Shown here piece by piece: positions 928 to 37,200 of a DNA stretch of 64,000 nt. Within the stretch, counting starts at the first letter, position 1; every line of letters starts with the position of its first letter. Source of the DNA: Schmidtea polychroa (lineage: Eukaryota). The stretch covers positions 183,074,312-183,138,311 of the forward strand of contig CM097886.1 of assembly GCA_044892525.1 (NCBI GenBank), in the 5' to 3' direction. The position numbers and the translations under genes are program-made. The notes below the pieces were generated by a model, which ran no database searches, was not told where the DNA came from, and saw only the letters and a program-made list of their open reading frames with translations.

Positions 928-3900
928 TTAATTGAAAAACATTTTAGTCCTAGTGACGATGCCAGCCTTACAGAAGGGGCATTCAAATAACTCCATGGAG
1001 CAAGCATTACATGTCAAATGGCCACATTGGAATCCAATTTCCACATTATTACCTGAGCAAATTTGGCACATCTAAATTGCAATAAATCAATACAAATTCA
1101 TCATATAATCTTACTGGTATTTCCTTATCATGTTCATTTCCTTCATTATCAGGTCTGGCAGTGTTTCTGTGACATTTCTCGATCTCCCCCTTAGCAACAA
1201 TGTCTGTGCACGCATCAATTATCCGCTGGCCACGTGACGTCCTCTTATAAATGTCACCGCCCAATGAAATTATCATTTTAATAGCTGAGATTAATTTCCT
1301 TTTAGAATTTGCCTAGAAATCGATCAATGCGATAAATCAATAATCAATCAATACATTATTGGCAATCGATATTTTCTCCAATAATTGTGTCAGCGCACAT
1401 TTGCCGCTTTCATCCTCACCATCGAATTCCTTTGATTCAGTGATCAATGCGTTCACCAGTTCCATTTCTCCCATTTCAATTGCAATTTGGAGAGGAATTT
1501 GATTCCTTATGTTTCGCAACATGACAAATTTCCCTTGATTTACCGAATCCAATAATTTCCATGCAAATTCCATCTTCCTTTCTTGCAATATAAATGTGAA
1601 TAAATTTTCACCGTTTCCAAATGTTCTCGGTGCCGATATTTCCGTTTGTATCAAATGGTCAAATAGCTCGATATCATCACTATATACAGCTTTGTAAAGG
1701 AGATTCTCTATAACCGACTGCTGCAATATGGAACTAGATTTATTGAATAGTAATCTTATTAGGTTAGCTCCACAAATCTCGCATGATTGGAAGGTATCCT
1801 TAGATATAGCTGACCGCAAAAAATTGTCAGGCAAAAGCTCAATCAATGCTTTTGCATATGAGAACCACTGATTTAGGAAAGCCGTTTGAAAATCATTTGA
1901 AGTGAAATTTGTCAATCTCGGCTGATTGGACACGAGTGCAAGCATTAATCTGATAAATTGATTTATTAATATATTTCAATAAATTCTACTTTTCACTTCC
2001 AATATTCGATGCCAATTGGAAAACAGTGATCCCATTGGTTGATTTGACATTGGCATCTGCTCCGTGTGCAATCAATATATTTGTGATATCGATTAATTTA
2101 TTCAAGTTCTAAAATTGATATTTACAAGCCAATCAAAATATATCATTACATCATCATTGATATCAATTGGTGGCTCGACAAGCATCTCAAACAATGGAGT
2201 GCTTCTCAAATTGTTAACACTGTCAACCTGTGCTCCAGCATTGAGTAGTGAACTGCACATATTTGGTTTCAGGCATTTCACCGCGAGATGCAGCAGTGAA
2301 TTGTTGTCACCATCATGAGCATTCGAACTACTTAAATCGAGTCGTTCGAGAAAACACGGAAAAAGAATTCCATGAAATTTCATTGACAATGTTAACGCGT
2401 TTTCATAGCAAGTCAAAGAAATTATTGATTGTGCAAATGGAATAACTGAAAATAATGAAATTCATTAATATTAATTGAATCATGTGTCTTTTATGGCTCA
2501 TTACACATCCCATTCATTTACTGCTTTAAAAAAATTGTTAAATTTAAGTTATGCAAAGTGATTTGATCAGTTATTATTAATTTATAATAATAATTAAATA
2601 TAAAAAAATGGGAAAATATTTTTAATTCCAGAATTTAAATTTAAACAAAATAAGTATAACATTAAGAAATGAAAATATTATTTACATTATAAAAAATCCA
2701 ATAAATACACGAAAGTAAAAATCTTAAACATTGTGAAACATTGCAAATTCATTCAATTTTTTAAATAGGTCAACTTAAAAATTTATAGATTTTTCGATTT
2801 TCAAGGTTTTAACGAAAGTTCAATATTAATATTGATTACTTTGATTCTCCCGGTAATTTTATGGAATCGACACCAGCGTAATCTGAAACACAGCTTATGA
2901 CATTTTATATTTTTGAATGGCAACTAGTGTTTCCAAATTACCCAAATTACAATTCTATATTAAATGCGTTTATTCATTGCAACGCAAAAAATCAACACAC
3001 AGGTAAGTTTTTATGTTTATATAATATACACGTATTTTTTTTATTTTTACATTATGGATGAGTTTATTCAATGCATCGGGTTTTGTGACAATTTTCTGTG
3101 ATTTTCTGTGTATAAAGTTTGTGATTGAATTGAATATTTATGCGCGTTCATTTGATTAATTTATTGTGGGTAATGATTCCAATGGCTGTCTGTCCACAAT
3201 TATATTTATTAAACCCGATATTATTCTAGCTTTTGTTTTACTATATTGAAATTTAGAATTAAACTTTTTGTAACAATTAATTTATCAAAAATTAAAATTT
3301 TATTTTTCAGTTTTTGCTATATTTTTACATTTTTATTGGTTAATAAGAATTTGCAATTTTAATTTCAAGCTTTTACAGCAATTCCTGATAAATCTCTTTT
3401 TAATACTTTTTCAAAATTTAAACTTCTTTGAATAAGCTAAATTATATTTAATTGTTTTATTAAACAATCATGAGTTATTTTCTGGTTTCCATATAATGAT
3501 TTGCGGCTTCCTGGAAATGGTCTCATAGAAATCTGGATTCAACCAGATAAAGATTTTTTCAAGCTGCCATCATAATTATTGTAAGCTTTTTCAATTTGTT
3601 TTTCATTTGTTATTATTGTTATAAATTATTGAATATATGTTTAGGAATTGTGATGTAAGCCTTTATGATACGTTCGTCTATGTGTACTAGTTATTGCATG
3701 TATACATATATTTGACCTACTTTTTTAATAACTTTAAATATACATTTCAGCAGAAGACACAAGCCGTTATGATGATGCGAGTCTGACCTAAATAATATTT
3801 GAGTTGACCTACATAATATATAAGGCCAAAACAGCCTCAGCAGGTCGATCAGTGGTGCTGTCATGATGGAAGCATATCTACTACTTATAGCAGCCTTTAT

Positions 3901-6900
3901 TCATTGGCAACAGGTGTAATCATTGTAGATCCTGATCCTGAACCAATTAAAATATGGATCGCGTTGATTATTTGTTGGAATTGCTTGTTGAGTGCGCACA
4001 CAGACACGAGGCAATGTTTGTGTGTTGGTGCTGGCTATTTATTATTTGTGGGTTCTGGAAGGACATTATTATTGGTTGTTTGGATGAACTAATTGGATCG
4101 CTTTTGAATATTGATATTTTGTTTGGTTCATAAAACTTGCTAATGGTTAGGGCTAATAAATCAGGAATGTGCAAAGGTGGATTTGCCGGAGGTGATGCTT
4201 CATGAGCTGTGGTGCTCTCAATTGCTGGGCGCATTCTAGACATGGAGGTTTGACAGATTATTTGATGGCAATACGAACAGGATGATATTACAGGTTTATA
4301 ACCACAGCGCAAAGGAGAATTTGTTCGAGATATTAAAGAACAAATGTGTTTCATTGCTCTTGTTGTTGAGCAAGCAATGCAGGCTGCTGCTTTATCATCG
4401 CTTCCTGATGAGTTATGAACTACCAGATGATCAATTTATAACCATTGGAAATGAAATATTGAGATGTCCAGAAGCTTTGTTACATCCATCGTTCTTGTGA
4501 ATGGATATTGTTGGTATTCAGGAGGCAACTTATGACAGCATTACATTTTCTGCAGGACTAAAAAGATATGATTTGATCCTTCCGTAATGCTTCTAGAATC
4601 TAGATGTTCCCGTGGCATTGTAACCAATGACCAAATAATAACCAAATCAAACATTTCATTTGGCACTCAAAATAATTATTTCACAGAAATTATTTCTATT
4701 TTCTTTAACAAATTAATTAAAAGTTTTAGTTTGATAAAGTTTCACATCAAAACAAGTATTAATATCGAAATAATAAAAGCAGATCGATTGCATATTAATT
4801 TGAATTAAATCAATTAATTAATTAATCAATTAACTAATAAATAATTTACCATTTTCATTTCCGGAATATCGATTAATATTCTGTAAATAATAGAAATATA
4901 AAATTCAAATCAAATAAATTGTGACATTTCCTCACCTCAACAGATCTCACAACATCGGCACCCCGGTTCACCAGTTGAGCACAAACATTTACCATCCCTC
5001 GAATAACTGCACAGTGTAGGCCAGTCAACCCCATCTATATCTCACATAATTATTCAATCAATAAACAACAAATCTCACAAATCCAGCATGATCAATATCA
5101 ATTGATCGATCTATCAAATATTCACAATTGTCCTCCAATCCACTCGCAATCGCCTCATGCAATGGAGTTTGTGAATACTAAATAATGCCAATATATCAAT
5201 ATCAATATTGAATACTCTATTGAATTACTTTGTTTTGTGTATTGGTATCGATCTCAAATTGCTGCAATACATTGATGCATTTCCTATGATGCAGCGAATG
5301 GGCCAAGGCCAATGCAGTCCCCATTGTCTACAAATATATTGATTTGATCATTTCAATAAACACATACTTCATTATTTGCATTGATATCTACAATGTCCTG
5401 ATTATCTAGTATAAATTTGGTCATATCGGCATCATTATCAGATATTGCTGTGTGTAATATGGTGAAATTGACCTTGATAATAAATAAAATTAATTATTGA
5501 TTTTGCATTATTCTGATGCACCTTTTGTCGTGATTCCATCAGAATCATTCGTTCTTGTATTTCTTCTTGTATTTCTACGAATCCTTTTTCCTTTGCTTTG
5601 TCAATGGCCTTGATCCATAACTGAATGATGAAATCAATGCTGATTTAATCAATTTCATCTCAAATTAGTTAATAATAATAATAATAATAACAATAATAAC
5701 ATAAAACAGGTAAATGATAAGGTAAGCATTTGCTGCAAAATCTTTATTAAGTGAGAAAATTATTTATATAAAATAATTCAATTCGATCTTTCATAATTTT
5801 GCTTCAATGTTGAAATGCTTGCACGATTTCTTTTTAATTCATTTCTGCCTTTTATTTGTTGAAAATTGATTAATTAAAATTACTGAAATGTAAAGCATAA
5901 AATATTTACGTGTTGACATATTTGAAAATATGTCCTACCAGTCAACTCAGGAAATTATTCACTATAAAATAGCGCTTAAAAGATTTCAAATATCTCAACT
6001 GGTTCTACTGTAACTGATGTAAGCGCTTAGGAACACTAATCCCCTAGCCATGGGATATATTAGTCGCTATCATATTATTAATATATTATTATCATATCAG
6101 ACTATTATCATATTATTAATTTTGATCCCAGAAATTATTTGTCTGAAACATTTTTAAAAACCTGTTTGTATGTATCCAATAGTAACAAATTATTACTATT
6201 ATTATTATTATAAGAACTTATTTTAAAAATTTTACCACAGATTTCCATTGACATTATATTTATTTAAAAGCTTGACTATGAATCAGTAAATATATCGATA
6301 TAATTGATATTCACGAATTTTCGACACCGCCTTTTTCAATTGAATTATTATTATTAATATGATTTGACATAATGAAATAACAAAATTCAAAAATGTATTT
6401 TATCACAATTTTTAATTATTTAAACAAAATTAATATTTTGGTAAATGGTTTTGTGTGATTAATGCTTTTCTAATCACAACAATTCACTCCTCCTAATTTG
6501 ATTGCTCTGCTGGCTATGGACGATCAACTGATAAATTCTCTAATACATAGCTTGAAATATTTTGGCTGCTTTTCTAATAGACGAAACGGACCATTATATG
6601 GAGCTTCTAATGATTTCCATACATCTTTTCTCATGTACACGAATTCACAATCCTTAATATATTTATTGATCGTCATACAGTCTTGCAATGGTCTTTCGAT
6701 TATTCTGAAGCTCTCAATAATTTCTTTAAATTGATATGGAGAAGCTTCTATTTAGGAATTAAAAATAATTCCTGGTACAGCAAGATCACATTCAAATGCT
6801 TTTTGTGTCGGAGAATAACCTGCTGAATCCCGACTGTTCCTTATCGTTAACAGTACCTGAGGTAAAACGTCAAACTTTTAATTTAATTTTATTCATTTTA

Positions 6901-9900
6901 TTAATTTATTATTAATTTTATCCATTGAAGCCATTTCTTGAGATTTTAGTGTCTGATGGAATTCTGCAACTTTACAATTGGCTTGGGAATGATAAGCGCA
7001 TGTTTGATTTGTATTTATTTCAAGAAAGTTGAACATATACTGGAATAAAGAGTTTGTAAATTGATCTGTTACAATTTCAGATGGGATTCCATATCGGGAA
7101 ATCCCCACTTCAATTAGTGATTTTGCCACAGTTTCTGAATCTATATATTTAATGGCCAATACCTCAGGGTAATATGTTTAACTATCGATCATTGTTAGTA
7201 GATAGGACTTCTCGTTATTTGCTAGGAAGATTTGCAATTCTGCTTTGATATGACGATATACTTTTGATTTTAAGCAGGAATCGCGTTGCTGACACAACAT
7301 CTGGACATCCTTTGTCATCTTGTGTCATGTATATGAACTCAACATCAATATCTTGGCCATTCGTATTTCTGGATGAGCGACATATTTGGGTATATAGACA
7401 GTACTGTGCGAATTAGTGTGAATATGAAATAATTTACATGTTTTATCATCTAGTTATACGACCATGTCAAAATTAGCTCCAGTTTAGTTTTACTGTTCTT
7501 ATATTTGTTGTGTAATAACGTATTGGAGTTTACAGACGTGTTGTTATAGATAATTTAGTAAATTCTATTGTGCTTCCTTTAATTTTTTACTAAGACTATC
7601 CAAACTATTCTAATCTTTGTTTCTTTCTTATTTTAAAAGATGAATGTTTCTCCCAAGAAGAGCACAAAAATTGTTACCTTAAGTGAACACATCAATGTAT
7701 CAAAGAGATATTGCCAAAGAGTGTGGTGCGAGTTTAGGAGCTGTAATCAACATTTTAAAACAAAAGAAGGAATTTGAGACGGTTTAGGCGAATAGAAAAG
7801 GAAAATGTGGAAGGAAGAGGAAGACAATAATAGATGAATTTATAATAGGAGTAAGTAAATTGAATTCTAGAGAAAATAACCAGCAACTTCAGAAAGGCTT
7901 AGCACATGGTGGAGTTATTATTCCCGATTCCACAGCTTGACAATGGCTTATCAAAGTTAGAACAAGTCTAATAGACCTCAAAAAAAAACAATTATTGAGC
8001 TTTGTTTAAAAAAGTGACAACGAAAACTTTACGACAGCTCATATCAATAGAATCATTAAACGCGATAAGGACGATGTTTTGATCTGGTTATTGTATAAAG
8101 GTACCGGATCCCTTGTGTCGGTTGAAGGCATGATAAAGGCGCTTTGTTTAATTTGTAGAAATATCGTAGCTGTTTTTAAAGATTATAATTTAAAACGGCA
8201 TTATTTTCAAAAATATGTTTCCACGTATGATGATTACGACGGAATGTATCGTAAAGATAAAGTAGCTGGACTTAAGGAAAATCTGTTTTCTCAACAAACA
8301 TTTTTCAAGAGAATTGTCACTCAAAATTATTCTGTCGTAAAAATCAGTTATGTGGTAACAAATATAATTGCAAAGAAGTCGAAACCCTTCACAGATCGCA
8401 AATTTATTAAGTAATGTTTGGAAAGTCTAGCTGACATTATTTGTCCAGATAAAAAATCAGACATATCAAAAATCAGTTTATCGCAACTAACTATAGGAGG
8501 ACGAATTAAAGATATTCAGGACACCTTTGTCCATTGTGAGGCGTTTTGTAATTTGTATTTAAATAATGGTATGATGTTGTGCTTGTTTGATTGTATGCTG
8601 AAATCCTTACTTATACATTAATTATTATTTTTTAGAAACTCATAAAACAAATTAACGTTATAATTTGTTTTAATAATATTTGTGTTTTTATAATAAACGT
8701 GTTTTAGTTATGGATTCTATTAATACCCGTAGCTCTGTGGCTAATATGGCGACGACGATTGCAAATTTTATCAAGCCACCAGAAACATATGACATGAATT
8801 CAGACGTGGAAGATTTTATCTTAGAAACGGAACGATTCTTCGAGATGACAAATATTGTCGATGAATACAGAAGCAAATTCGTCAAAGCTTTTCTATCAAT
8901 CAATTCAACGAAGAAATATGAGTTGACTAATGAAACTCTGCATTATACAGAAAGATTAAGAAACGCTTTTGCTAAGAACAGAAGTCTTATCGATGATCTC
9001 AACGAAGCGCTAAATTATCGTCAAGGAAATGAGGCTGCCGAAGAATTCTGCTCAAAAATTGAGAAACTTGCAAAAAATATTTTGAAGCATAAACTTGATG
9101 AAGAAGAACTAAAGAAATTTTTGCTATTCAATTCGCTTGAAGATAAAGAAGTTAAAAAAGATCTCAAAATGCAAGATTTAAAATCATTTGATGAAATGAA
9201 AGAAAGATTAAAGAGACACGACCAAGTTTCAAAAGAAATTAATGTATTTCATGCTGATGTAGCTTCAATGAATAAAACACAACGCTATGCTGATGCTGTT
9301 AAGAAGAGCTTACCAAGATATAGTTATGATAACAGATCAATTCGAGAACGAGAAGCTAATCCCAGATTCAAAGATGAATATAAAAGAGAACCTCAACATA
9401 ATCCAAGATTCAAAGGCGATCTTACCAGAGAACATCGATATGCTATTTCAAATGAATGAAAACCTATGAATAGAAGTAAGCCTTATAATACCAGGGAATT
9501 TCATTCGCGAGATCATGTCCAAACAAATCAAATTTTGCGATGTTGGGCGTGCCACGAAGAAGGTCATAGAAGATCTGAATGCCCCAATATTCAATGTGCC
9601 CATTGTAAAAGATCTGGACATTTCAAACATCAGTGCCATGAGTTATTTCCAGGCAGACGTCGAAAATTCCATAAATCAGTGGCTGCATTCGGTGACGAGG
9701 ATTCAGAGGCTGATTTTGAGTACCCAAATGGGAATGCTCCACCACACGAGGAGGTGATCGGAGCAATAAATTAAAGGTAATTAATGATATGAGTAAGGGT
9801 TGTATGATTTTGAATGATTGTGATAGGTTGAATGATTGTGATAGTTTGAATGATAACTGTTGTGATGGTGTTTTTGATTATAGAAATTATATTAATATAT

Positions 9901-12900
9901 ACATTAATAAATTTTGTATGGATGAAGTTTTCAAAGACCCACCCCTAACTTCTAATGAACTAAATGTTCTTAATCGTGATAAACGGAATGATATAATAGT
10001 ATACGATAAAATGCAGGGAAGGCCCAGTGTTACCGTAATGATTAATAATGTAAAATTAGTATGCCTATTAGATACTGGAGCTAAAATAAGTGTGATTGAT
10101 TATAATATTTTTAAAATACTTGGAAATTTGAATATGACTACAAGTAATCTGAAATTAAGATGTGCGAATGATAGCCCGATTGAAATTTGCGGTAAAACTT
10201 TATTAAATGTAAAAGTTGATAAAATTTCTGATATTAAAAAAGTAGAATTCGTTGTAGCCAAAGATATAAACCCAAAGTTGATAGGAGGTATAGATTTTCT
10301 CGAAAGATTTGGAATGCAATTGCAAATAGAAAACCGTACAGACGAAATAAATACAATTATGGAAAATTCATTTAATAACCACATAAGTGAAGATAAGATT
10401 ATAAATAATTTAATTTCCACGTTTGACGGTATTTTTATGAAACATAAATGGGATGTTGGAAAAACCGAACTATTAAAGCATGAAATACTTACTAAAGGTA
10501 GTCCGATTGTAATAAACCCAAGACGACAACCTATACATTTAATAGAAAAAATTGAAGAAAATATTCAAGAAATGTTGAAATATGGCATTATATATGAATG
10601 TACATCTCCTTGGAATTCTCCATTAGTATGTGTTAAAAAGAAAAACAGTAGTGATATAAGAATATGCTTGGACTACCGTGCTTTAAATAATATAACCGAA
10701 AGACCTATTTTTCCCATTCCAAATACTGATGAATTATTAGATATTCTTGACGGAGCAAAGTTTTTCTCGACAATTGATTTAGGCAATGCTTATAATCAAG
10801 AAGAACTCGATGATGCATCAAAATTGAAAACAGCATTTCCGACAAAAAGCAAGCAATATTACTTTAACAGAATGCCATTTGGAATAGCAGCCGCACCAGC
10901 AACATTTCAAAGACTTCTCGTTTCCGCCAATGGAACATTAGTAAAAAGACTACACACATCAAACGAAACCATCATTTCATCATCAGAACTTTTCTTCAGT
11001 GCAGCAATGAATGAAGCAAATTCAAAGCTATCCTTACATTCGAACTCAGACGCCATTAAAGGTTTTAATAACCCATCCAAAAATTTGGCAATTTTATATT
11101 GAGCGGTTCCTACCATCGATAACACTGGTCTCATAGACATACCTGCTTTATGTACTTTTGGAAGACCATAAAACTGGTTTATATACAACGCCTGATAGTT
11201 TTTGTGAGTTTAAATATAAAAGGAATATGGTGAGAGGATTAGTGTTTCGTGCTTGGTCACTATCCTCCACGTTTGCTAATTCAGTAAAAAGTATTGATGT
11301 ATTAGTTGAGTTGTTACTTAAAAATGGCTACTCTAAATCTTCTCTTGAGAAGATGACAAAAGTGACCGTGGATAAGTTAATGTTTAAATCTGATAACGTT
11401 GGTATGCGTACGTCTGAATCTGAGGTACCTATTGATCCTGAGGAAAGAACTATGTTAAATTCGGAAAGTGACAAGAATCGATCCAATCGCATGGAGCAGA
11501 AATATGTGTTAGTATTGCCTTATTCGGAGGGTTTCAGAGAATTTAAACATAAAATTCTCAAATATGTAGACAAGGATCAATTCAGGATTGTTTCCACTTC
11601 TTGCAAAGTTAGCAGTATGTTTACTAGTAAATGTCCAACGCCAATTGGTTTGTGTTCTGAGCTCGTGTATCAATTTTCATGTAATGGGTGTAATGCCATA
11701 TACATTGGAGAGACTGCCCGTCATCTCTGCACCCGAGTTCTTGAACACTGTCGACCAAAAGGATTGACTAATATTAGTAATCATGTTAGGAAATGTGTCA
11801 GTAAAAAAATAGGTATCTCTGATTTTAAAATTATTTCAAAAGGTTTAAGTAATTATTGGGAACGAGTAACTTGTGAGGCATTGTTGATTAGATATTTAAA
11901 TCCAAAAATAAATGATCAAGTTGCCCGTTCCACGGAGAATTTGAATGTGTTTAAGTAATTGAAGGATGAAGGTTGGGAGTCGTGTTTGTGGTATAATTAT
12001 GTTTGTGTTTTGTAAACTATGTAATTTTTTTTAAATTTCTTAACTTTATGTTGAATGTTAAATGTTATTAAATTAAAATTTAATTTTAAAATAATATGTA
12101 TGTGGGGCTATGTAAAATATGGTTTGGTTTTTTAAAATATTGTTTTTGAAATATTTTTTTTAAAATTTTTGATACAGTTTGGAGATGATTATTATTAGTT
12201 AATTTGTTTAGATATTGCATATTTTATGTCTTATTATTGATTATCCAGATTGCGGCCTGACGAAGATTGTTGTACAATTGAAATATATCGCGTTTATGTT
12301 GAATTTATTGAGTTGGCATTTCTGTATTATTAAATCATTGCCACGTTTTTTTGATTATTAATAATAATAATAATATTAATTATTATTATCATAACAATCA
12401 CTAAATGATGGCAGCGATTTAAATATAAATAAAACGACAATCCAATATTAATAACTTTTTTTTAAAATTAAGAAATAATGAAATAACAAGTGATTATAAA
12501 GTAAAATTATTTATTGGTATATTTTGGATAGAAAAATAGAAATCGTTAATGAATTGCATAATTATATCTTTCTTGAATGTTGCTTTTTAAATTGCGTCTT
12601 TCAGAAGCTAGAGATATTCGTTTGAATGAGAATGCAAATGCCTTTATTGCTCTATTGATGCTAAATGTGCTAATGTTCATTGGAATTATTTCATAAACTT
12701 GCGTTCGAATTGACTCTGATGTTATTGAAACATCCTCAAGAAAAAACCTCACGCAAATTCTTTTTCAGGCGTTAACAGTTTTCCTTCGTGGCTTTTCGTT
12801 GATTCAATCCTTCCACCTTTTTGTATACACGGATAACACTCGCAACTGTTTGGTAATTTATATTTAATTAGTTTGAAATTTCTTTTATGCTTTAGCTGGG

Positions 12901-15900
12901 ATATATTTATCGTAAACAAATAGCTCATCGAATCTGACAGCTTCATACTTACAGAGATTTACATTCACCCTTAATATTTTGATTTTGACATCATTATTGA
13001 AAAAAGAGAAATAATAATAATAATAATAATTTTAAATCAATAAATAATAATAAATTAATAAAATAACTTGTCAATATATTATATAATTCAAATAAATCAA
13101 TAATTATTCCATTTCCACAAAGTTTATGAAATATTTCAACATAAAATCGATCGCCTTCACTCAAATGCGAAATTTAAAAAATTTAACAAATCGATCTGAC
13201 GCTTCATAAAATATTTATTTAAAATTCATAAATAAACCAATCAAATATTTTCTCACCGATTTGTCGTAAACCGTTTTCTTCATGATCGATTCGACAAACA
13301 GATGATGGCCTTGATTGACAGCCAATTCCAGAAATGACAGCTCGCCCTAATCAATATCAATACAAATCCAAATAATTATTTGACCTTACGATTCTGCGCT
13401 GCCCATTGATAGTGTGAGCAGAATTGAATCTCTTGAACCCGCTCATGTGCCCGTGAGTGATGCAGCGATAAAGGACGCACTGAAATTATTTATTTATTGA
13501 TTTATTCAAATAATCAGCTCACTTCTTTCATTAAATTTGCATTTTTGTCCATTTGTGCTGTCAATAATTCCATTGCATTATTGATTTCCTATTGATGAGA
13601 ATATTAATTATATCAATCAATAAATCAATCAAACTTTATCATCAATTGGTTTGTCAAGGATTAATTTAATAATCTTATCAGCATTGGACTCGATTGCTCC
13701 CTCCAGCACAGCCAATCCAGTCTAAATATCAATTATTAACCAATCAGAATATCACAAATTTACATAAATATTCTGCATTATGAAATCAGAAGATTTGAAC
13801 AAATCACCAAATGCGATTGCATCATCCCGTTCAATGGCAGGAAATAACTGAAATATTTATTCAAATTGATTCATAATGAAATAATTCACACTTTCTCCGC
13901 ATGAGTCAATATTTCCACGCGATCAGCACGATTATATTGCTTTGCATAATCCAGCGGACTCTTTCCATCCTAAATAAATAATCCAATCAAAATATCCGAA
14001 TCAGCGAATCATTTAAACATCCCCATTCACAAACAGATCATTAAAGCACTGTGGCAATAAATGGTACTAAAACCGACACTGCAAAACCGCGTGCAAAGTG
14101 TAAATACCCGTGAGATATCATGCTAAAGAAATAGTTGAGAAATGGCAAATCTGATCCGAATTACTAGCCAATGGAATTGCCGATTTGCATTTATTAATGA
14201 ATTCTGTCAGTGGAGATCTCCAAATAAATGAAGTCGACATTTCAATATTGCTTCATTCATTTCAGACATTTACTGCATAAAATTCTCCAGTGCAAGGAAT
14301 AAATTGCCAGAAAAGCTGCTAGAAAAGCTTTTCATTCATTTTGAGGCGTAGCAGAAAATATTTCAAATAGCAAAAATTATTTCTGTTGAGAAGTGAAAAA
14401 GTGAATTAAAAATAAAATCGATAGCAAGGAAATAGCCAATTAAAATGCTGAATTTAATGTGAGAAGTAGAGAAATGCAAATTTACAGGAAATATTTTACA
14501 TACCAAAACGTAAACAATATTTGTGATGAACATCTGGCCTGCACAATCAATATTCAGTGGCCATTGTTCTGCTTGCATTGCAATTATTGGCCTGATCTGT
14601 TTCACGGTAATTTTGATACAAATGCTATGTAAATATATAATTATTATTTTTAGCTTTGTTTTTATCATTATCATTAAATTATTTGTGAAATGTCCGAAAT
14701 ATTGGCAAATACAAATGAGAAACCCGATGAGTATTCTGGCAATGAAAGCGATGAACATTATGACAGTGAATATATCATACAATAGTGACAGCGACACTCC
14801 TGACAATGAAGGAGCTTCTTCCTCCTCAGAAAGCGAGAGTGAATATGAGAAATTTACAAAATAAAGGTGCGAATGTTACAGTTGATGAGCAACTATTTCC
14901 AACCAAGCTCGATGCTTTATAAATCATGACTTTGTTCTCACAATTTAGAAAGGTAAACCGAACTAAAGTTATTTTTAAAGTTATTTCAAAACATAAATTC
15001 TCTTTCATTTTATAATAATATATCTGATCGAATGGCAAGGAAATGTAGCGTCAAATCTGGGCCTAGAATATGGCCGCTTCAAGTACCTTTCAATATGCTA
15101 GGCTTAGCTGCAATGAATGCCTCGATACCATATAAGGGAACTGCAGCAGATAACATATCAATATGCTAGGCCTAGCTGCAATGAATGCCTCGATACCATA
15201 TAAGGGAACAGCAGCAGATAACATATCAATATGCTAGGCATAGCTGCAATGAATGCCTCGATACCATATAAGGGAACAGCAGCAGATAACATATCAATAT
15301 GCTAGGCCTAGCTGCAATGAATGCCTCGATACCATATAAGGGAACTGCAGCAGATAACATATCAATATGCTAGGCCTAGCTGCAATGAATGCCTCGATAC
15401 CATATAAGGGAACCGCAGCAGATAACATATCAATATGCTAGGCCTAGCTGCAATGAATGCCTCGATACCATATAAGGGAACTGCAGCAGATAACATATGC
15501 TGCTCAATACAAAATCAGAAAGCGTGTCACCAGTAAATATATCGACACCTTCAAATAGCCTCCATCTCACGCGTAAATGGCGCATGATTGGATATTGCAA
15601 TAATAATAACATCACAAATAATTATTTTCATTGCTTTAAATGAATTATTTCCAGTTTAATAATGAATATTATATTATAATTATATTTATTTATTATTTGA
15701 TAATATGGCAGCGCATGTAAGGCTACTTTATAAAGGTTATTTGCTAATCAATCGCTTCTGCTTGGGGAGCAAGATATTATATTTGATGGCCCATTGAAGC
15801 CATTATGACTGTTGCTGGTAGCAATTGCTGTGATTGTTATTGGCCGTTCTAGTGTTAGTTATCTAAATTGATAAATTATTGGCTGTTGGCAATGCAATTT

Positions 15901-16615
15901 GCTGCGGCGGCTGGTAAAGGGCAAGATCATATGATAATGCTGTCACATCGATATTGGCCATATCGGGCCTGCAGGGAGCTATTGCATTCTCACCCCGCTA
16001 ACGGTTCCATTGACACCTCATTCTGTGCTCTCTTGCCTCTCACTAGAGCTCTCTGAGGCAGTTCTCAATGGCATTTCATTCATTGCTCCTTATGCAATCC
16101 ATTTCACATATTCAATTAACCAGATCGCAACTCACCAGATTTAATTGATATTTCATTATATAAAATGTTAATGTTTACTTTTGTTCGGCAATCGATTCGG
16201 CATTTCCGCTGCAGCAATAATTTCAATATTTCTGAATGCCCATGGCAGCTAGCATAATGAATCGCTCTCCATCCCTGCAATTTATCAATTGATTATTTAT
16301 TTGCAATGATTATTTACCCATTTGGTCTCAGATTCCACATCGCAGTTGCTGTCAAGCAATAACCTGGCAATATCAACAAATCCATAACGGCAAGCAATGT
16401 GAATGGGCAACCGGCCCTGAAATCAGAAACATTAACCCAATAATTCGCATTGCCAATCAATCTCACATAATCATCAACAATCCTATGCACAAATTCTCCC
16501 CTCAAATTATCCCTGACGCCCTCCACATTTCCCCTCATCAAGTGCGCCTTGAAACATTGAAAATCCCTGCAATGCAAATTATCCAATGCAAATCATAATC
16601 AATATTTCACCCCAT
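928..16615 (-). CDS. Ankyrin-repeat protein with C-terminal C3HC4 RING finger (putative E3 ubiquitin ligase), copy 1; 21 exons, about 892 aa
   Basis: Hand-spliced exons: 16615-16611, 16566-16467, 16416-16318, 16274-16179, 13969-13892, 13847-13764, 13721-13635, 13588-13523, 13479-13390, 13346-13257, 5620-5522, 5472-5368, 5327-5229, 5177-5079, 5034-4936, 4880-4850, 2445-2150, 2108-1990, 1949-1355, 1312-1115, 1071-928. All introns are GT-AG, 17 of 20 are 40-55 bp, phases are compatible, and the 2679-nt CDS has no internal stop. Ankyrin motifs include [49 protein letters not shown]: CQIC-x10[10 protein letters not shown]6-CPFC. The joins across the three long introns are inferred from phase and motif continuity. 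Confidence 0.85.
4143..4545 (+). pseudogene. Actin pseudogene fragment, internally deleted, antisense in intron 16 (copy 1)
   Basis: [25 protein letters not shown] is joined to [21 protein letters not shown] and [43 protein letters not shown]; contains stops and frameshifts. Confidence 0.92.
4591..4605. mobile_element. hAT excision footprint TTCTAGA-A-TCTAGAT
   Basis: The orthologous site in unit 2 holds a 2400-bp hAT element flanked by the TSD TTCTAGAT. Here 15 bp remain, versus 8 for an empty site. Confidence 0.88.
6500..7430 (-). mobile_element. Decayed Gypsy-type integrase fragment
   Basis: [27 protein letters not shown]...[18 protein letters not shown] (rve core) and a C-terminal [19 protein letters not shown]; multiple stops. 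Confidence 0.8.
7640..8020 (+). mobile_element. Tc1-family transposase N-terminal remnant
   Basis: [17 protein letters not shown]...[14 protein letters not shown]...[12 protein letters not shown]...KKQLL, with a frameshift and stops. Confidence 0.78.
8127..8517 (+). mobile_element. hAT (SPIN/Charlie, GTF2IRD2-like) transposase remnant
   Basis: [23 protein letters not shown]...[26 protein letters not shown]...[15 protein letters not shown]. Confidence 0.85.
8535..10917 (+). mobile_element. Ty3/Gypsy LTR retrotransposon, 5' part (gag, protease, partial RT), truncated at a Penelope element
   Basis: gag 8680-9774 has two CCHC knuckles and one in-frame TGA. Protease [11 protein letters not shown]; RT motifs IDLGNAYNQ and [16 protein letters not shown] possible LTR (TG at 8535) and PBS-like TGGCGACG at 8747 are low confidence. 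Confidence 0.92.
10918..12360 (+). mobile_element. Penelope-like element (GIY-YIG type), 5'-truncated with an inverted RT segment
   Basis: Minus strand 10918-about 11175: FYGLPKVHK...[13 protein letters not shown] (RT). Plus strand about 11175-11958: RT C-terminus and GIY-YIG ([29 protein letters not shown]), then an AT-rich 3' region containing a hammerhead. Confidence 0.92.
12252..12294 (+). ncRNA. Minimal type I hammerhead ribozyme in the Penelope 3' region (copy 1)
   Basis: CTGACGA (12257), stem II GATTG/CAATT, then GAAA-TATA-TC. The palindromic tetranucleotide helix III is typical of Penelope hammerheads. Stem I is weak. Confidence 0.75.
12546..12946 (-). mobile_element. IS630/Tc1-like transposase HTH remnant
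   Basis: [21 protein letters not shown]...[11 protein letters not shown]...[27 protein letters not shown]...ERYNYA. Confidence 0.65.
14700..15620 (+). mobile_element. piggyBac transposase remnant in intron 4 (copy 1)
   Basis: Acidic N-terminal tract, then [13 protein letters not shown] and [43 protein letters not shown], then [12 protein letters not shown]. No TTAA-flanked termini found. Confidence 0.8.
15090..15498. repeat. 68-bp tandem array, 6 units, inside the piggyBac remnant
   Basis: Units start at 15091, 15159, 15227, 15295, 15363 and 15431; no spacers. Confidence 0.97.
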
Positions 16616-18149
16616 CTTGATATTTACTTTCTGTTTTATCTATCAATTAATTGCAAAATCAATAAATTTAATTATAATTTAATTAACAAGTTCAAAATCA
16701 AAAAATCTTACTTCCTAAAATCCAAATGAAATCAATTAAATAGCAGCCAATCAATTCTCAAGGCTAAATAATAAATTTGAAGCGATAAAACAAATCAATT
16801 GCAATCAATAATAAATGTAATATATATAATGGAATTGTCAGGCTGATAAAATTGATATTCAATATTCAATGCGACAACCGAACGATCTGACGGATTCCCC
16901 CGATGCGGCAATTATTATCAATGATTACAACATTCCATGAAGCTGCAAATATTATTATTATTCTTTGGTAACTTTCAAATAATTTGCAAGCATTACACAA
17001 ATGCCTAAATATTATTTTAAATGCTCAATTATATCCACTCAAATCCTCATGCTAATAAATAACAATATTAATAACAATTTTATACAAATCATTTAATTGC
17101 TTTATAATTGCTGATATTTCATAACATCACATATAATTGTTACATAAAATGAATAAATTTATTAATTAAATAATAAATCAAATAGAAATTATATTAATAA
17201 ATACAAAGATGAAAAACATAAAAAATTAAACATTTGAATAATTATAAAAGCCAACATAATTATATAAACAAATATACAAAAATATTATAATGGTAATATA
17301 ATTGAAAGCACATTAACGCAAAACAAATATATTTCACTAAAACTGGAAATAATAATGCTTAAATTAAATCAGCAAATGTTTAACAAAAAATATCATAATA
17401 TTCTAAAAATTTAAATATTTTAATTTCAAATATATAATGCATTAGTAAGATGGGAAACTACTTACAAAATTATTAAAAGTTTGTTTAAAATTAATGGTTT
17501 TTTGAATTTGACTTTGGAATTTGATTTACTGTTCACCTCTTAAGTGGTAATTGATAACATTTTTGTGAACATAATTTTTCAAAGTTTCTCTATGTCTCAA
17601 TTCGAATTTGGAATTTTCAGTTTTCATCATTATTTACAATCGTCTTTCTTCCAAAAGTGTATTGTTGGTTTCTGAACTATGCCGAAATTCCGAGCATTTT
17701 GAAAGCTACAGAATATTATTATTTTTACTTCATGATTCATTAGTCGAGAACACTTCAGATCTATTTCAGGACGAGGAGATTTTAATCGGTTTTTCCTTAT
17801 TAGTTTCATTCATTAAATTGCTTCAAGTTACGATCAAGGACATTTTGGATTGGTACTTATTCTGAGGATCCATAAAAACTCGAGGTTTCGAGCTTATATG
17901 ATATCACTGGAGTAATTACAAGATATAATTCTGCGTTCAATAAGGCTCATTTATAATTATTCATCTGACAATTCCACTCATATTTCATTAATGATTTTGC
18001 CAATCATGACAGAAAATAGCTATTTTAGCTCCTCGGTTTATAAAAAATTGATCAAAGATTGAACCGTAAATAATAAAGCAATTGTTGGGTCGCTTAGGGG
18101 TGTGTCATTTTATTGCTAAAATGTTTTAGGGGTATTATATGTAAGGAAT

Positions 18150-21100
18150 TGACTCCTTTCTAAACGCCTTAATGACTATTGTACTTTAGACCATCTGTGT
18201 ACCCATGTCAGAGGTGTACGCAATGATTGAAAATCAATGACCAGGTGAGCTCTATTGCTAAAATTACTCCTTATTGCATTTTCTTTTCAGATTCTGGAAT
18301 CCGATAAAAAGTCTTACGTCATTATTCAGTATCTGTTCTATCGCTAGATCATTGTCATGTTTTCATTTAACTGTGGTCTTCATTGCCCATTTCAATAATC
18401 TATTTTATGTATCCTTATGATTCTATAGCCCTTCAAATGTTTTATGGTCTGTTCTAATAACTACCTCTGTTCTATATATATGGCCTAAATTATTTCTATT
18501 GTTGAATATCTTAATTGGGCACCTTTTAACGTTTTACTTGCATTAGCTATTACATAAACTTTACATTTTTCTTCTTCTTGTATTAAGACTGCCCCTACGG
18601 CTTTACCGCTGGCGTCAGTCATAACTATAAATTGTTTTTTAAAGTCTGGGTATCTTAATATTGGTGCAGTTACTAATTTTTCGTTTATTGATCAATGTTT
18701 TTGATGTTTTGCTGTCCATTTCTTTTGTGGTTTATTGATTTTATCGTTTATACTTTGTACTATGAACACATTTTTACTTTCTCCCTTGGTTTTTATTCCT
18801 TTAGTTAATTCTATCATCGGTGCTTCTATTTTTGCATACTCTTGTATAAATTTACGATAATACCTTGTTAAACCTAAAAATCCTTGCACTTGTAATGTTT
18901 TTGGGACTGGAAACTTTTTTACAGCTTCAATTTTATCTGGGTTTAGTGTTATGCCCTCCACACTAACAATATGTTCCAAATATAACGCTGAGGGCTCCGC
19001 CCATTTACATTTAGTTGATTTAATCTTTATCTTTGTCTTTCTTAATCGCTGTAATACGTTTGTAATGTCTTTTAAATGTTCCTCAAATGTTTTTGATGAT
19101 ATTAGTATGTCGTCCATGTAAACTGCGCAATGATGTACACCTACTAATATTGTATTCATTAAACGCTGGAAGGTTGATGGTGCATTGGTTAACCCAAAAG
19201 GTAATCTTTATTTGCATAAATGGCTGAAAAATATTTAGAGTCTCTTAATTTATCAAATTGTTCTTGTGCTTTTGGAAATGGGTATGAGTCTTTTACTGTT
19301 ACGTCATTTAGTTTATGATAGTCAATGCACATTCTTATTTCTCCATCTTTTTTTCTAACTGGTACTATTGGTAGTGCCCATTGTGAAAAACTTTGTTTAA
19401 TTACACCTGCCTGTTTTAATTCTTTAATTTTTCGTTTTATTTCCTCCTTCAATTTATAAGGTACTCATTAGGGTCTTTGTTTTATGGGTCTATCATTATC
19501 TGTATCTATCACATGTCTAATGATGTCTGTATCTCCTAAATTAAATTCATGCTTAGCAAAAACATCGTTACATTCATCAATTAAGGTTTCTAATTGTGAT
19601 TGTTGATTTTCATTTAAATATTTATTATCAATTTTTACTTTATCGTAGAATTTTATGTTATTTGGTTTAACCAGTTCGACAACGTTTTCACTCGTATTCT
19701 CCGTTATTCACATCTCACTTATTTCAATAATTTGTTCTGCTTTTCCTTTAAATAGCTTTCATAGTTTTGTATCTTTATGTATTTTTATATTATTATTTTC
19801 ATAATTTGCAAATCGTATCAGGATTATTCCGTTTTTTGGAGTTACACACTCGTCTATCAGCATACATTGTGATTTTTTGTGATTGCCGTAACAAGCTCAA
19901 AAATAAAAGTGTCCTCACTTTTGATATTAACTTTTACAGGAACTATATGACTACATTTGTATTCTAGCTCTAAACCTTCTAAAACGATTACCTCTGAAAA
20001 TTTTGCGTTACGGTGGTTTGCTTTCCTTTTAACTGTACTATTTGTTAAATCTATCACACAATTTTCTAGTTTATTAAGTATGTCCATTCCAAGAACACAT
20101 AAGCTTTTGCACTCCTCAGCGACTTTAATATATATGATTTATTGTTTGACTTGCCAAATGGGCAGTTAGCTCAATGTTTTCTTTTAATGGAATATCGTGT
20201 GCTGACAATGATACCACTCTTTCTCTTGTCGTTACAATATTTTTCTTTTGATTCTCTGTTAATTAACCCTCTCTTATCAATGATGCTGCTGCTCCTGTAT
20301 CAACTTGAGCATATATGCTTATAATATCTATTGTTATTTGAAGTAGTGGTCTTGCTTCATTTGCCGATCCCCATAGGTCATTTATGCAAAGTTCCAAACT
20401 ATAGCACCCGTATATATTTTCTGGGTATACCATGACAACCTTTGCTTAGTTTTGGCATCTTAATTTCAATATTATTTTCCATTTCTTTTAATAAATCTCT
20501 TTGATTATCGTATAGGCCTTTGCTTGGCTGTTGTTCTGATTCTTCCGGGTTTCTTCATCTTTTTCTATGATCATTATTTGCTGCTAGTCTTCTCTTTGTC
20601 TTTTTATTAATCGGATCTATTTGTCATGTTTTGCTGTTATTAAATATTTCGCTATGAATGGACAAAAACATGCTATTAGCTTGTACGAATTTCCAAACAC
20701 TTGTCTGAGCTACTTTAATGACACTAATGATGGGCAAATCATTTTCAATAGAGTCACTGTATAGTATATTCATAATATTGCTGAGAACATGTTTCCGAGG
20801 ATTGCGAAATATCCCAATATAATATATAATATTTGGTATAATACTCAGTATACCACCATTTTTTAAATGTTCCTCTACCTGAGTAGTTTCCATATATACT
20901 TCATAATCATTGTAATTGCTCCGTTTATGACCTAATTGGTTTTGACTTCCTTAGTTATCGTTCTTAATTAGTTATTTCTGTTGACCATTTTAGTAATTCC
21001 CCTTCTTCTGTTTACTCTCGTTTATCCTACTGTTTAGATAATTGCTCTCTAAATTCTCAAATTGTTTATTTCCCCAAATTGCCGCGCTCAGGTTTTCTTC

Positions 21101-27340: not shown

Positions 27341-28154
27341 NNNNNNNNNNNNNNNNNNNNNNNNNNNNNNNNNNNNNNNNNNNNNNNNNNNNNNNNNNNN
27401 NNNNNNNNNNNNNNNNNNNNNNNNNNNNNNNNNNNNNNNNNNNNNNNNNNNNNNNNNNNNNNNNNNNNNNNNNNNNNNNNNNNNNNNNNNNNNNNNNNNN
27501 NNNNNNNNNNNNNNNNNNNNNNNNNNNNNNNNNNNNNNNNNNNNNNNNNNNNNNNNNNNNNNNNNNNNNNNNNNNNNNNNNNNNNNNNNNNNNNNNNNNN
27601 NNNNNNNNNNNNNNNNNNNNNNNNNNNNNNNNNNNNNNNNNNNNNNNNNNNNNNNNNNNNNNNNNNNNNNNNNNNNNNNNNNNNNNNNNNNNNNNNNNNN
27701 NNNNNNNNNNNNNNNNNNNNNNNNNNNNNNNNNNNNNNNNNNNNNNNNNNNNNNNNNNNNNNNNNNNNNNNNNNNNNNNNNNNNNNNNNNNNNNNNNNNN
27801 NNNNNNNNNNNNNNNNNNNNNNNNNNNNNNNNNNNNNNNNNNNNNNNNNNNNNNNNNNNNNNNNNNNNNNNNNNNNNNNNNNNNNNNNNNNNNNNNNNNN
27901 NNNNNNNNNNNNNNNNNNNNNNNNNNNNNNNNNNNNNNNNNNNNNNNNNNNNNNNNNNNNNNNNNNNNNNNNNNNNNNNNNNNNNNNNNNNNNNNNNNNN
28001 NNNNNNNNNNNNNNNNNNNNNNNNNNNNNNNNNNNNNNNNNNNNNNNNNNNNNNNNNNNNNNNNNNNNNNNNNNNNNNNNNNNNNNNNNNNNNNNNNNNN
28101 NNNNNNNNNNNNNNNNNNNNNNNNNNNNNNNNNNNNNNNNNNNNNNNNNNNNNN
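27341..28154. other. Assembly gap (814 N)
   Basis: N run. Confidence 1.
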
Positions 28155-29669: not shown

Positions 29670-30080
29670 NNNNNNNNNNNNNNNNNNNNNNNNNNNNNNN
29701 NNNNNNNNNNNNNNNNNNNNNNNNNNNNNNNNNNNNNNNNNNNNNNNNNNNNNNNNNNNNNNNNNNNNNNNNNNNNNNNNNNNNNNNNNNNNNNNNNNNN
29801 NNNNNNNNNNNNNNNNNNNNNNNNNNNNNNNNNNNNNNNNNNNNNNNNNNNNNNNNNNNNNNNNNNNNNNNNNNNNNNNNNNNNNNNNNNNNNNNNNNNN
29901 NNNNNNNNNNNNNNNNNNNNNNNNNNNNNNNNNNNNNNNNNNNNNNNNNNNNNNNNNNNNNNNNNNNNNNNNNNNNNNNNNNNNNNNNNNNNNNNNNNNN
30001 NNNNNNNNNNNNNNNNNNNNNNNNNNNNNNNNNNNNNNNNNNNNNNNNNNNNNNNNNNNNNNNNNNNNNNNNNNNNNNNA
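29670..30080. other. Assembly gap (411 N)
   Basis: N run. Confidence 1.
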
Positions 30081-34200: not shown

Positions 34201-37200
34201 GTCGATCAGTGGTGCTGTCATGATGGAAGCATATCTACTACTTATAGCAGCCTTTATTCATTGGCAACAGGTGTAATCATTGTAGATCCTGATCCTGAAC
34301 CAATTAAAATATGGATCGCGTCTGTGTGCGCGTTGATTACACCTAACCGCGAAAGTTAACATTGTCTATAATATAAGTTGGTGTGCACACCACCTGAGGT
34401 GAGTCACCAATTATATGACAATGTTAACTTAATTTCATTTATTCAATTTTCCAAAAATCGTTTAAAGGTAAGTTTTTGCATTGAAGTAATTTTTAGGACT
34501 TGATTTTGATTTTATATAATTATGAGATCATTATTCAAGTTCTTAAATATTACTGTTAGTCAGCATTTATAATATTGATAATATATAACATTGATAATTA
34601 AATTTCAGGTGTTTTTTTAGGAATTTTATCGTATTTTATTTGGATTTATTTGGATTTATTTCGTAAAAATGTAAGTTAGATATTTTTATAATTATAAATA
34701 TGTAAAGTAATCACTAAACATTTATTTTTTAAAGACATTTAGTAAAGAATGGATAAAATATTTTTTAAGTTTTTGTAATCTTCTTTCGAATTTTGTCTAT
34801 TTCTGTAATTCTATGATTTAATTTATTAAAATTTACGATTTGCAATGTTTTTCCTGCAAATTCAAAGATGTCGAAGGATCTTCTTCAATATCTGTAAATC
34901 TAAAGAAATTTTATATTCTAAATTATTTTATAATTAAATCTTACGATGTATTTACTTCTTTTTCCCTAAAGCTCAACGTAGAGCAGTCGGAATCTGATTC
35001 AAAAGTTTTTTTGTACATAATTTTTTAAATAATTTTAAAATATTGATATGTTAATTATATGTTAATCAATCTGAATTTCGCATGAAAAACACTTTACTTA
35101 ATTTTGTATGTATTTTTCATTATGTGTGCTGTGTTTGTATGCTTAATTATTTTCTCTCACTTTTTAGATTCCTATAATAAATATGTTAAATTTCGCGGCA
35201 TTAAATTTCTACACACAGGTAAGTTTGTGTGTTCCTATAATATATATTTATTGATTTTTTTTTTAGATTATAGATAATGTTATATTTCGCGGTTAGGTGT
35301 ATTTGTTGGGATTGCTTGTTGAGTGCGCACACAGACACGAGGCAATGTTTGTGTGTTGGTGCTGGCTATTTATTATTTGTGGGTTCTGGAAGGACATTAT
35401 TATTGGTTGTTTGGATGAACTAATTGGATCGCTTTTGAATATTGATATTTTGTTTGGTTCATAAAACTTGCTAATGGTTAGGGCTAATAAATCAGGAATG
35501 TGCAAAGGTGGATTTGCCGGAGGTGATGCTTCATGAGCTGTGGTGCTCTCAATTGCTGGGCGCATTCTAGACATGGAGGTTTGACAGATTATTTGATGGC
35601 AATACGAACAGGACGATATTACAGGTTTATAACCACAGCGCAAAGGAGAATTTGTTCGAGATATTAAAGAACAAATGTGTTTCATTGCTCTTGTTGTTGA
35701 GCAAGCAATGCAGGCTGCTGCTTTATCATCGCTTCCTGATGAGTTATGAACTACCAGATGATCAATTTATAACCATTGGAAATGAAATATTGAGATGTCC
35801 AGAAGCTTTGTTACATCCATCGTTCTTGTGAATGGATATTGTTGGTATTCAGGAGGCAACTTATGACAGCATTACATTTTCTGCAGGACTAAAAAGATAT
35901 GATTTGATCCTTCCGTAATGCTTCTAGATCAGGGGTGCCCACTAATTTTTCTAGGAGAGCTACATTCACATCCAAAATGTGTATGCGATCTACTTTTTTA
36001 ATACTTACATAATATTTACCTACAATGCAATAAATTCATCACAATAAAACAAATATATGTCAAAATATGGAAAATTAAAGTATATAACTATTTATTATAA
36101 AAAAATGTAACTTAGGAAATCAAATTTAATGAAAATTATTTTTATATAGAACTTTTCGATGTTGATGCTCTACATTGGGTTGAATCCACTAGATTTTTGT
36201 AGTTTGGGATATAAGTGCTAAGACAACTTCTTAGGCTGGATTCCAAATGGTCATCTGTTAATGTTGCTCGGTACTTTGACTTTATAATTTTCAGATTGTG
36301 AAAAAGCAGAATCACATAAATAAGTTGAACCAAAACATGATACTAAATTTTCGAAGCATTTTTTCAAGTTTGAATATTTATCCTCTGATAGATATTTCCA
36401 TACATTTGCTTCGGAAGATCTTGATTTAATGAAGATATCATTTTGAAGTGTGATTATTTCCATTTCAAGTATAGGGATATCCATTTTAAACAAAGTTGAA
36501 ATTGAATCTGCAACAATTTCTGGTTTTATTTTTGGATTAAACGGAAAGGACATAAATGCAGCCACAATTTCAAGTTTCTTGGAGTCTTGAAAACGTCTCT
36601 CGAACTCTAAAACCAAAATTTTGATCTGTTTCGCATATCTCGTAATATTAAAGTTGACATTTTCAGATTCTTTTAATTGTGACAACATATTTGGAAAATA
36701 ACTTAAATTTTTGTCTTCTATTTTGGTAATAAGTAAATGAAGCTTCTGTATAAATGCATTGATTGAACTTATCATATCGAATATCAATTTATCCTTACCT
36801 TGTAAATCGAGATTTAATTCATTCAGAATTGCAGTAATATCTACTAAAAATGCCAAATCCAAGAGCCAAACATCATCTTCCAATTGCTTGAACTCATCAC
36901 CTCTTGCGGCAAGGAACAACTTAATCTCAGAAAGCAAATCTCTAAATCTTTGTAAGAATTTTCCTCTACTTAGCCATCTTACATCTGAAGGCATCAGTAA
37001 TTCAGTAGGACCTTCGCTATTACTTTCTTCAATTTGTAATTTGAAAAGTCGTCTCTGAAGACTTCTTGCACGAATCGAGTTAGCAATTTTGAATGTTATT
37101 TCCATAATATCTCTCATATTCAGAATTTTAGCACACAAGGCTTGTTGATGAATAATACAGTGGTAGGAAAGAAAATCTGGGAATTCACAATCATTCCTAC

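Follow-up and report, generated by a model that had tools for sequence, protein, structure and literature searches.

The window analysed here is a stretch of 64,000 nucleotides (nt) of Schmidtea polychroa DNA (GCA_044892525.1, CM097886.1:183,074,312-183,138,311, forward strand). It is AT-rich (~30% GC) and consists of two tandem copies of a ~33.7-kb unit that are 98-99.4% identical. The subject of this analysis is a gene of the first copy that encodes ankyrin repeats followed by a C-terminal RING finger. An independent gene model on the minus strand contained 21 coding exons between window positions 928 and 16615, plus a non-coding leader exon. The coding sequence was uninterrupted from the ATG at 16615 to the stop at 928 (2679 nt, 892 amino acids), and every intron was GT-AG. 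A gene on the plus strand was excluded, since every ankyrin-like or RING-like frame sits on the minus strand. Exon 1 contributes 5 coding nt and exon 2 is 100 nt long; exons 3-15 range from 66 to 105 nt and are followed by the six exons of the 3' part (individual lengths are listed below). Intron 1 is in phase 2, introns 2-15 are all in phase 0, and introns 16-20 are in phases 1, 0, 2, 0 and 0, respectively. Seventeen introns measure 40-55 nt; introns 4, 10 and 16 (2209, 7636 and 2404 nt) contain repeats and transposon open reading frames (ORFs). An earlier reading of this locus made from the letters alone (the sequence-only reading) had described the same run of phase-0 introns, and its limits (exon 2 beginning at 16566, exon 15 ending at 4936) coincided with the independent model. 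The model likewise reproduced the abundance of repeat-sized exons (7 of 14 measure 96-105 nt) and the mixed phases and large exons (296 and 595 nt) of the 3' part. By our own estimate, 14 consecutive phase-0 introns would occur by chance with a probability of ~6e-5 if half of all introns were in phase 0, a value that is approximate in that exons are not independent of one another.

Splicing was assessed with three RNA-like contig runs (X1-X3, from two studies) and one DNA-like run (X5), which were placed on 13200-16650 and cover exons 1-11. Introns 1, 4, 5, 6 and 9 were found in X1-X3 as minus-strand GT..AG joints exactly as modelled. Joints for introns 2, 3 and 8 were present in RNA-like contigs with a few variant letters, which derive from sister copies in which exon 2 is 3 nt longer. 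Loose contig ends matched the junctions of exons 7 and 8, 8 and 9, and 10 and 11, the last of these spanning the 7.6-kb intron 10. None of these joints was found in X5 over 13200-16650. The remaining symmetric exons were examined in a set of 20 minus-strand paralogues (18 genes fetched from the genome and the two window copies; about ten plus-strand paralogues were left out). Support for exons 11-15 came from lengths and AG/GT sites that were the same in all 20 of these genes, down to 72% nt identity, and from the colinear homologous proteins P0003 and P0041. We conclude that the gene is transcribed and spliced.

The repeat content of single exons was determined by scanning with Pfam (cut-off for Ank, 21.1 bits), and the 20-paralogue profile of each exon was compared with the profile of the canonical exon by hhalign. 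The features of the gene, in the order of transcription, are as follows, with two features of the second window copy at the end.

16712-16727, minus strand: 3' end of the non-coding leader exon; the loose end of X3 at 16639 matches it exactly, with one match per gene copy.
16640-16711, minus strand: leader intron, 72 nt, GT-AG, with a gtaag donor after the leader exon.
16611-16639, minus strand: exon 1, 5' untranslated region and ATGGG (predicted ATG at 16615-16613), followed by intron 1 in phase 2; joint 16566/16611 in X1-X3 only.
16467-16566, minus strand: exon 2, 100 nt, phase 2 in and 0 out, without an ankyrin signature; 35 genome matches.
16318-16416, minus strand: exon 3, 99 nt, canonical ankyrin repeat and first copy of the variable 142-nt unit; Pfam Ank 30.6 bits, residues 1-31 aligned to profile positions 2-32.
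16275-16317, minus strand: 43-nt intron of the exon-3 unit.
16179-16274, minus strand: exon 4, 96 nt, canonical ankyrin repeat and constant last unit of the variable block, with an 11-residue tail; Pfam Ank 29.8 bits; joint 13969/16179 in X1-X3.
13970-16178, minus strand: intron 4, 2209 nt, phase 0, with a 68-nt tandem array; RNA-like joint.
13892-13969, minus strand: exon 5, 78 nt, truncated ankyrin repeat; hhalign 96%, in register; joint 13847/13892.
13764-13847, minus strand: exon 6, 84 nt, phase 0-0, no ankyrin signature detected by Pfam or hhalign.
13635-13721, minus strand: exon 7, 87 nt, with an ankyrin-like match that is weak but in register (hhalign E 0.013); joint 13721/13764.
13523-13588, minus strand: exon 8, 66 nt, phase 0-0, without likeness to ankyrin or a family match; loose ends at 13634 and 13479 match both of its ends.
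13390-13479, minus strand: exon 9, 90 nt, phase 0-0, without a demonstrable ankyrin repeat (gene model, contigs, hhalign).
13257-13346, minus strand: exon 10, 90 nt, phase 0-0, resembling an ankyrin repeat by eye only, with a helix pair in the structure model described below; joint 13346/13390.
5621-13256, minus strand: intron 10, 7636 nt, phase 0, transposon-filled; the sequence of a loose end at 13257 is that with which exon 11 begins.
5522-5620, minus strand: exon 11, 99 nt, degenerate repeat; hhalign 68%, residues 3-33 aligned to profile positions 2-32.
5368-5472, minus strand: exon 12, 105 nt, ankyrin repeat; in-register match to Pfam Ank/Ank_3 (E about 3e-4); hhalign 88%.
5229-5327, minus strand: exon 13, 99 nt, weak ankyrin-like match (gene model, Pfam, hhalign).
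5079-5177, minus strand: exon 14, 99 nt, ankyrin repeat with a TPLH motif; Pfam Ank 21.5 bits; hhalign 87%.
4936-5034, minus strand: exon 15, 99 nt, the last of the symmetric exons and an ankyrin repeat; Pfam Ank 21.5 bits; hhalign 91%.
4850-4880, minus strand: exon 16, predicted 31-nt micro-exon, phase 0 in and 1 out, required by the frame; its peptide is kept in 16 of 20 paralogues and in P0003.
2150-2445, minus strand: exon 17, 296 nt, several ankyrin-like repeats (gene model and Pfam).
1990-2108, minus strand: exon 18, 119 nt (gene model and Pfam).
1355-1949, minus strand: exon 19, 595 nt, encoding about six repeats of ankyrin-like type (Pfam and homologue search).
1115-1312, minus strand: exon 20, 198 nt, linker (gene model).
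928-1071, minus strand: exon 21, 144 nt, encoding the RING finger and the stop; Pfam zf-C3HC4_3 at 32.6 bits (cut-off, 27).
50030-50171, minus strand: extra 142-nt unit of the second window copy, a 99-nt chimeric ankyrin exon (50030-50128) plus its 43-nt intron.
38767, minus strand: acceptor of exon 15 in the second window copy, which reads AA instead of AG; the exon itself is identical to that of copy 1.

Comparison of the 20 paralogues located the variation in exon number between exons 2 and 5. The number of exons of the exon 3/4 type per gene was 2, 3, 2, 4, 3, 6, 2, 2, 2, 5, 4, 3, 4, 4, 5, 4, 5, 2, 5 and 5. The variable unit, a 99-nt exon followed by a 43-nt intron (142 nt), was present in 2-6 copies, and the last exon of the block was always 96 nt. 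Each of exons 5-15 occurred a single time, with unchanged order and length, in 20 of 20 genes, some of them only about 72% identical at the nt level. Exon gain and loss is confined to one homogenised block, and exons 5-15 constitute a frozen scaffold. Exon number across the family, which had been suggested as a check on the cassette idea, was thus constant for 11 of the 14 exons and variable in the first block.

The two window copies also differ from each other. Copy 2 carries the additional chimeric unit, and exons 3-5 were 94-96% identical between the copies (16179-16416 and 13892-13969 versus 49891-50270 and 47619-47696); almost everything outside these exons was 99-100% identical, introns and transposons included. 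One neighbouring gene copy contained two identical consecutive exons. Within the internal units, the framework codons and the intron were nearly invariant (intron pi 0.027) and codons 2, 7, 10, 11, 31 and 33 were highly variable, with variation that was not concentrated at third positions. We take these codons to lie where ankyrin repeats usually contact ligands.

The sequence-only reading had treated exons 2-15 as cassettes, any of which could be skipped, duplicated or swapped without a frameshift. The cassette description holds for exons 3-15, which are symmetric and for which frame-neutrality follows from the phases, but not for exon 2, which is asymmetric (phase 2 in, 0 out). Duplication was observed for the exon 3/4-type unit but not for exons 5-15, and swapping took two forms only, in-register chimeras inside the first block and block mosaics among paralogues. 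Skipping was not supported. With 13 exons in phase 0-0 any skip would be frame-neutral, so that exons 3-15 might be omitted in combination to produce many isoforms from each gene. Consistent with such a use of the exons, P0003 lacks an equivalent of exon 8 and P0041 lacks exons 10-12. Moreover, loss of the exon 15 acceptor in copy 2 would force either a cryptic site or a skip that keeps the frame, as exon 15 is 99 nt long and in phase 0-0. However, no exon-skipping joint was among those listed over exons 1-10 for the three RNA-like runs, in which all canonical joints link neighbouring exons, although contigs drop rare isoforms and are a weak test of skipping. The gaps in P0003 and P0041 may be prediction gaps; these two proteins and P0001 match none of the 20 genes closely, and the exons that they miss are therefore not readable as isoforms. 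Finally, the strict conservation of the 11 scaffold exons in 20 genes suggests that all of them are needed. We consider it improbable that exons 3-15 serve as RNA-level cassettes.

Not every symmetric exon proved to be an ankyrin repeat. In exon-by-exon Pfam scans, exons 3 and 4 cleared the cut-off, exons 14 and 15 were just above it, exon 12 was just below it and exon 5 was weak; the ankyrin family profile (PF00023/PF12796) was passed by exons 3, 4, 14 and 15. In exons 3, 4, 5, 12, 14 and 15, exon residues 1-3 aligned to positions 1-3 of the Ank profile, with exon starts at position 1 or 2, indicating that the introns sit at the repeat boundary. The hhalign values of exons 5, 11, 12, 14 and 15 ranged from 68% to 96%, exons 7 and 13 gave weak matches in register, and exons 6, 8, 9 and 10 gave no match to the canonical exon profile. 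The earlier assignment of one ankyrin repeat to each exon was accordingly upheld for six exons by Pfam and for exon 11 by hhalign, was weak for exons 7 and 13, and was not supported for exons 2, 6, 8, 9 and 10.

Homologous proteins and a structure model were examined as well. Ank_2 was detected with E-values of 5e-30 in P0003 and 7e-44 in P0041. An AlphaFold 2 model of P0003, built from a 20-row alignment, was confident only in the 3' half, with helical repeats at residues 370-715, and placed one helix pair per exon for exons 10-15 at low confidence. Over 460-660 columns, the fold matches of this model were all ankyrin arrays, namely designed ankyrin repeat proteins (DARPins), tankyrase, ankyrin-B/R and the ankyrin domain (ANK) of MIB1. 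In exon 21, all eight Cys/His ligands of the RING finger could be read in the translation, and the PF13920 profile was passed.

A different origin had been proposed for the 3' half of the gene. Ank hits were obtained in exons 17, 18 and 19, with several repeats per exon. Among the paralogues, exon 19 fell into at least four deep types, with about 67-70% identity between types. On the chromosome-scale contig C2, exons 6-15 were 91-97% identical among copies carrying three of these exon-19 types, and one gene copy was a three-part mosaic. The paralogues g9, g11, g12 and g16 are mosaic relative to the window gene itself: exons 6-15 were 91-97% identical and exon 19, which belongs to separate deep types, only about 67-70%; g16 also had diverged exons 5-7. 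As judged by these alignments, the 5' and 3' parts of the family have uncoupled histories, and the simplest reading of this pattern would be recombination or gene conversion between paralogues. The uncoupling on C2 would also be expected if exons 17-21 were of separate origin and had been fused to a 5' module with one repeat per exon, and the boundary does lie near the long, transposon-rich intron 16. The 3' half is, however, itself ankyrin-like, the fold matches span most of the protein, and the complete exon plan is common to all 20 paralogues, the most distant included. A fusion explains the observed pattern less well than loss of introns with a 3' bias, which is a general model, or than homogenisation of the 5' block by gene conversion or recombination. 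A separate origin of the 3' half was thus not borne out and is unlikely, even though its history is distinct.

The gene belongs to a sizeable family. Searches of the genome gave 51 matches for exon 19 and 35 for exon 2. At least 7 gene copies lie in a tandem array beside the window, with a period of about 30-35 kb, and many further copies are found farther away, both on the same contig (185-188 Mb) and on others. The genome contains at least 35 ankyrin-RING genes, which form a large lineage-restricted family. Among database proteins, the sequence relatives were four or five family-specific entries; the rest were generic ankyrin proteins.

With units 98-99.4% identical, with assembly gaps at equivalent places of both and with three introns filled by transposons, one has to ask whether the pattern could be an artefact, that is, a chance arrangement of frames, a dead pseudogene, or duplicated haplotypes collapsed into a false tandem array. 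The gaps were at 27341-28154 and 29670-30079 in one unit and at 61292-61433 and 62898-63349 in the other; their equivalence indicates that the inter-gene part is hard to assemble and that the number of copies in the array may be uncertain. Against an artefact stand the spliced RNA-like contigs, whose joints are absent from X5, the intact 892-amino acid ORF, and exon lengths and splice sites that are kept at 72% nt identity. In addition, the copies of the array differ in exon number and in specific codons. The differing exon numbers together with the transcribed variants argue that the tandem copies are real. An artefact is largely refuted and in our judgement extremely improbable.

Our conclusion is that the gene is, very probably, a transcribed member of a lineage-restricted family of predicted E3 ubiquitin ligases with ankyrin repeats and a C-terminal RING, in which growth by exon modules is active only in the first block. 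The 5' two-thirds represents the known class of repeat-protein genes that grow by exon-module duplication, with repeat-sized, symmetric phase-0 exons between tiny introns of 40-55 nt. For the first block, the following mechanism may be envisaged. The 142-nt unit, being nearly identical from one unit to the next, could expand and contract by in-register unequal recombination or slippage. As the intron is removed in phase 0, the product stays in frame at every gain or loss of a unit. The variable ankyrin block would then provide a surface for substrate recognition, and the RING would recruit an E2.

Several points weigh against this interpretation. The read data consist of contigs only, pooled over near-identical gene copies and limited to exons 1-11, and near-identical tandem copies can be mis-assembled. 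Nor does the rule of one ankyrin repeat per exon apply literally throughout, owing to the five exons that gave no ankyrin match. The predicted local distance difference test score (pLDDT) of the P0003 model is below 50 across most of exons 5-13, and the model is too unreliable there to assign repeats to exons. Lastly, the ligase activity and its targets are putative, and we infer the recognition role and the recombination mechanism as well.

Exons that coincide with repeats have precedents. The membrane-binding domain of human ankyrin-1 is one example, with exons of 99 and 198 bp. Genes in which exons equal repeat modules, and which have grown by local duplication of an intron/exon module, constitute the second class of Street, Rose & Barrick (2006), according to the summary in PMC4585158. 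The gene described here resembles this class in having one repeat per exon (exons 3, 4, 5, 12, 14 and 15), the same boundary within the repeat, and symmetric phases. It differs in that only a sub-block is still duplicating, in that four repeat-sized exons have no detectable ankyrin signature, and in that the introns are very short (40-55 nt), one of them (43 nt) lying inside the homogenised 142-nt unit.

The LRR-ROCO genes of brown algae, with which the sequence-only reading had drawn an analogy, contain successive phase-0 exons of equal length and show exon insertions and deletions (PMC3341825), and alternative splicing of the ROCO repeat exons has been reported (PMC11378527). Runs of equal-length phase-0 exons are shared with these genes and with the NB-ARC-TPR genes, here represented by the first block, where 43-nt introns follow 99-nt exons, and by exons 13-15, each 99 nt long. 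Brown-algal candidate receptors likewise form a large clustered family, with variation concentrated in the repeat domain and with gain and loss of exons between paralogues, which in the present family applies to the exon 3/4-type unit but not to exons 5-15. In contrast to them, the present family has ankyrin repeats, a RING rather than ROC-COR or NB-ARC, and turnover limited to 2-6 N-terminal units, and it belongs to another kingdom. Nor did the contigs of the three RNA-like runs, a weak test, reveal over exons 1-10 the alternative splicing of repeat exons reported for the algal ROCOs. The analogy is apt for the first block, but not for the rest of the gene.

Fungal NOD-like receptors with ANK, TPR or WD repeats of high internal conservation (for example PMC13449251) similarly contain near-identical repeat units with few hypervariable positions and a variable repeat number, a combination that implies unequal recombination plus diversification both there and in this family. 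Their repeats usually lie within one exon, whereas here every unit includes an intron and a RING serves as the output domain. The arrangement is also reminiscent of DARPins, which are among the best fold matches and in which the framework is constant and a few surface positions vary. The variable codons 2, 10, 11 and 30-33 of the exons presumably correspond to DARPin library positions 5, 13, 14, 33 and 1-3. Unlike DARPins, the repeats described here occur in nature, are encoded in the germline and are joined to a long ankyrin scaffold and a RING, and their binding is putative.

Ankyrin repeats followed by a C-terminal RING of the zf-C3HC4_3 type are also found in animal MIB1/MIB2 and in plant XB3/XBAT, and the ankyrin domain of MIB1 was one of the fold matches. 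Orthology was rejected in both cases. For MIB1/2, Pfam found only Ank families and zf-C3HC4_3 in P0003, P0041, P0001 and the window exons, with no MIB/HERC2 or ZZ domain. For plant XB3/XBAT, the XB3/XBAT31 RING family (PF24921) scored 16.8 bits against a cut-off of 50.

The locus provides an RNA-confirmed example in which intron phase and the correspondence of exon and repeat let a repeat domain change length in frame. It also indicates that frame-neutrality is necessary but not sufficient for such change, because 11 of the 13 symmetric exons are frozen in genes that have diverged to about 72% identity. With its variable first repeats, hypervariable surface codons and uncoupled 5' and 3' parts, the family is a reasonable candidate for a fast-evolving substrate-recognition system. 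A bolder proposal would be a recognition system diversified in the germline, directed for instance against transposons, viruses or non-self, in which the cassettes are also combined within an individual by alternative splicing or by somatic recombination of the 142-nt unit. This would widen the target range of a ubiquitin ligase; we consider it very unlikely.

Additional observations were made in the long introns. Intron 4 is long in all paralogues (351-7072 nt). Its tandem array of 68-nt units (about 15082-15621) was covered in X5 at more than 10 times the depth of the neighbouring sequence, and the unit is therefore a high-copy genomic repeat. A non-canonical joint, 13971/15996, was present in two RNA-like runs and connects intron-4 sequence beside exon 4 to a position 2 nt before exon 5. 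It probably represents unspliced RNA, or DNA, from a paralogue whose intron 4 is shorter.

Intron 10 contains retrotransposon-type ORFs, with gag (zinc knuckle)/protease/reverse transcriptase-like frames on the plus strand at 8680-11958 and an integrase-like frame on the minus strand at about 6527-7324. Further ORFs of this type lie on the minus strand at 18692-19452, and both the intron-10 and the 18692-19452 insertions are common to the two tandem copies. Compared with positions 3964-3969 and 4597-4599 of copy 1, intron 16 of copy 2 is longer by about 1 kb (34321-35300) and about 2.4 kb (35928-38331), respectively; these length differences are insertions or excisions that followed the duplication.

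Elsewhere in the genome, the open frames around Ank hits ranged from about 35 to more than 1000 amino acids, and both kinds of ankyrin gene are present. Strong Ank hits in very short frames (35-85 amino acids) were found at C3:130.69-130.89 Mb, C2:117.51 Mb and C1:166.23-166.27 Mb, and these clusters may be further ankyrin gene families with one repeat per exon.

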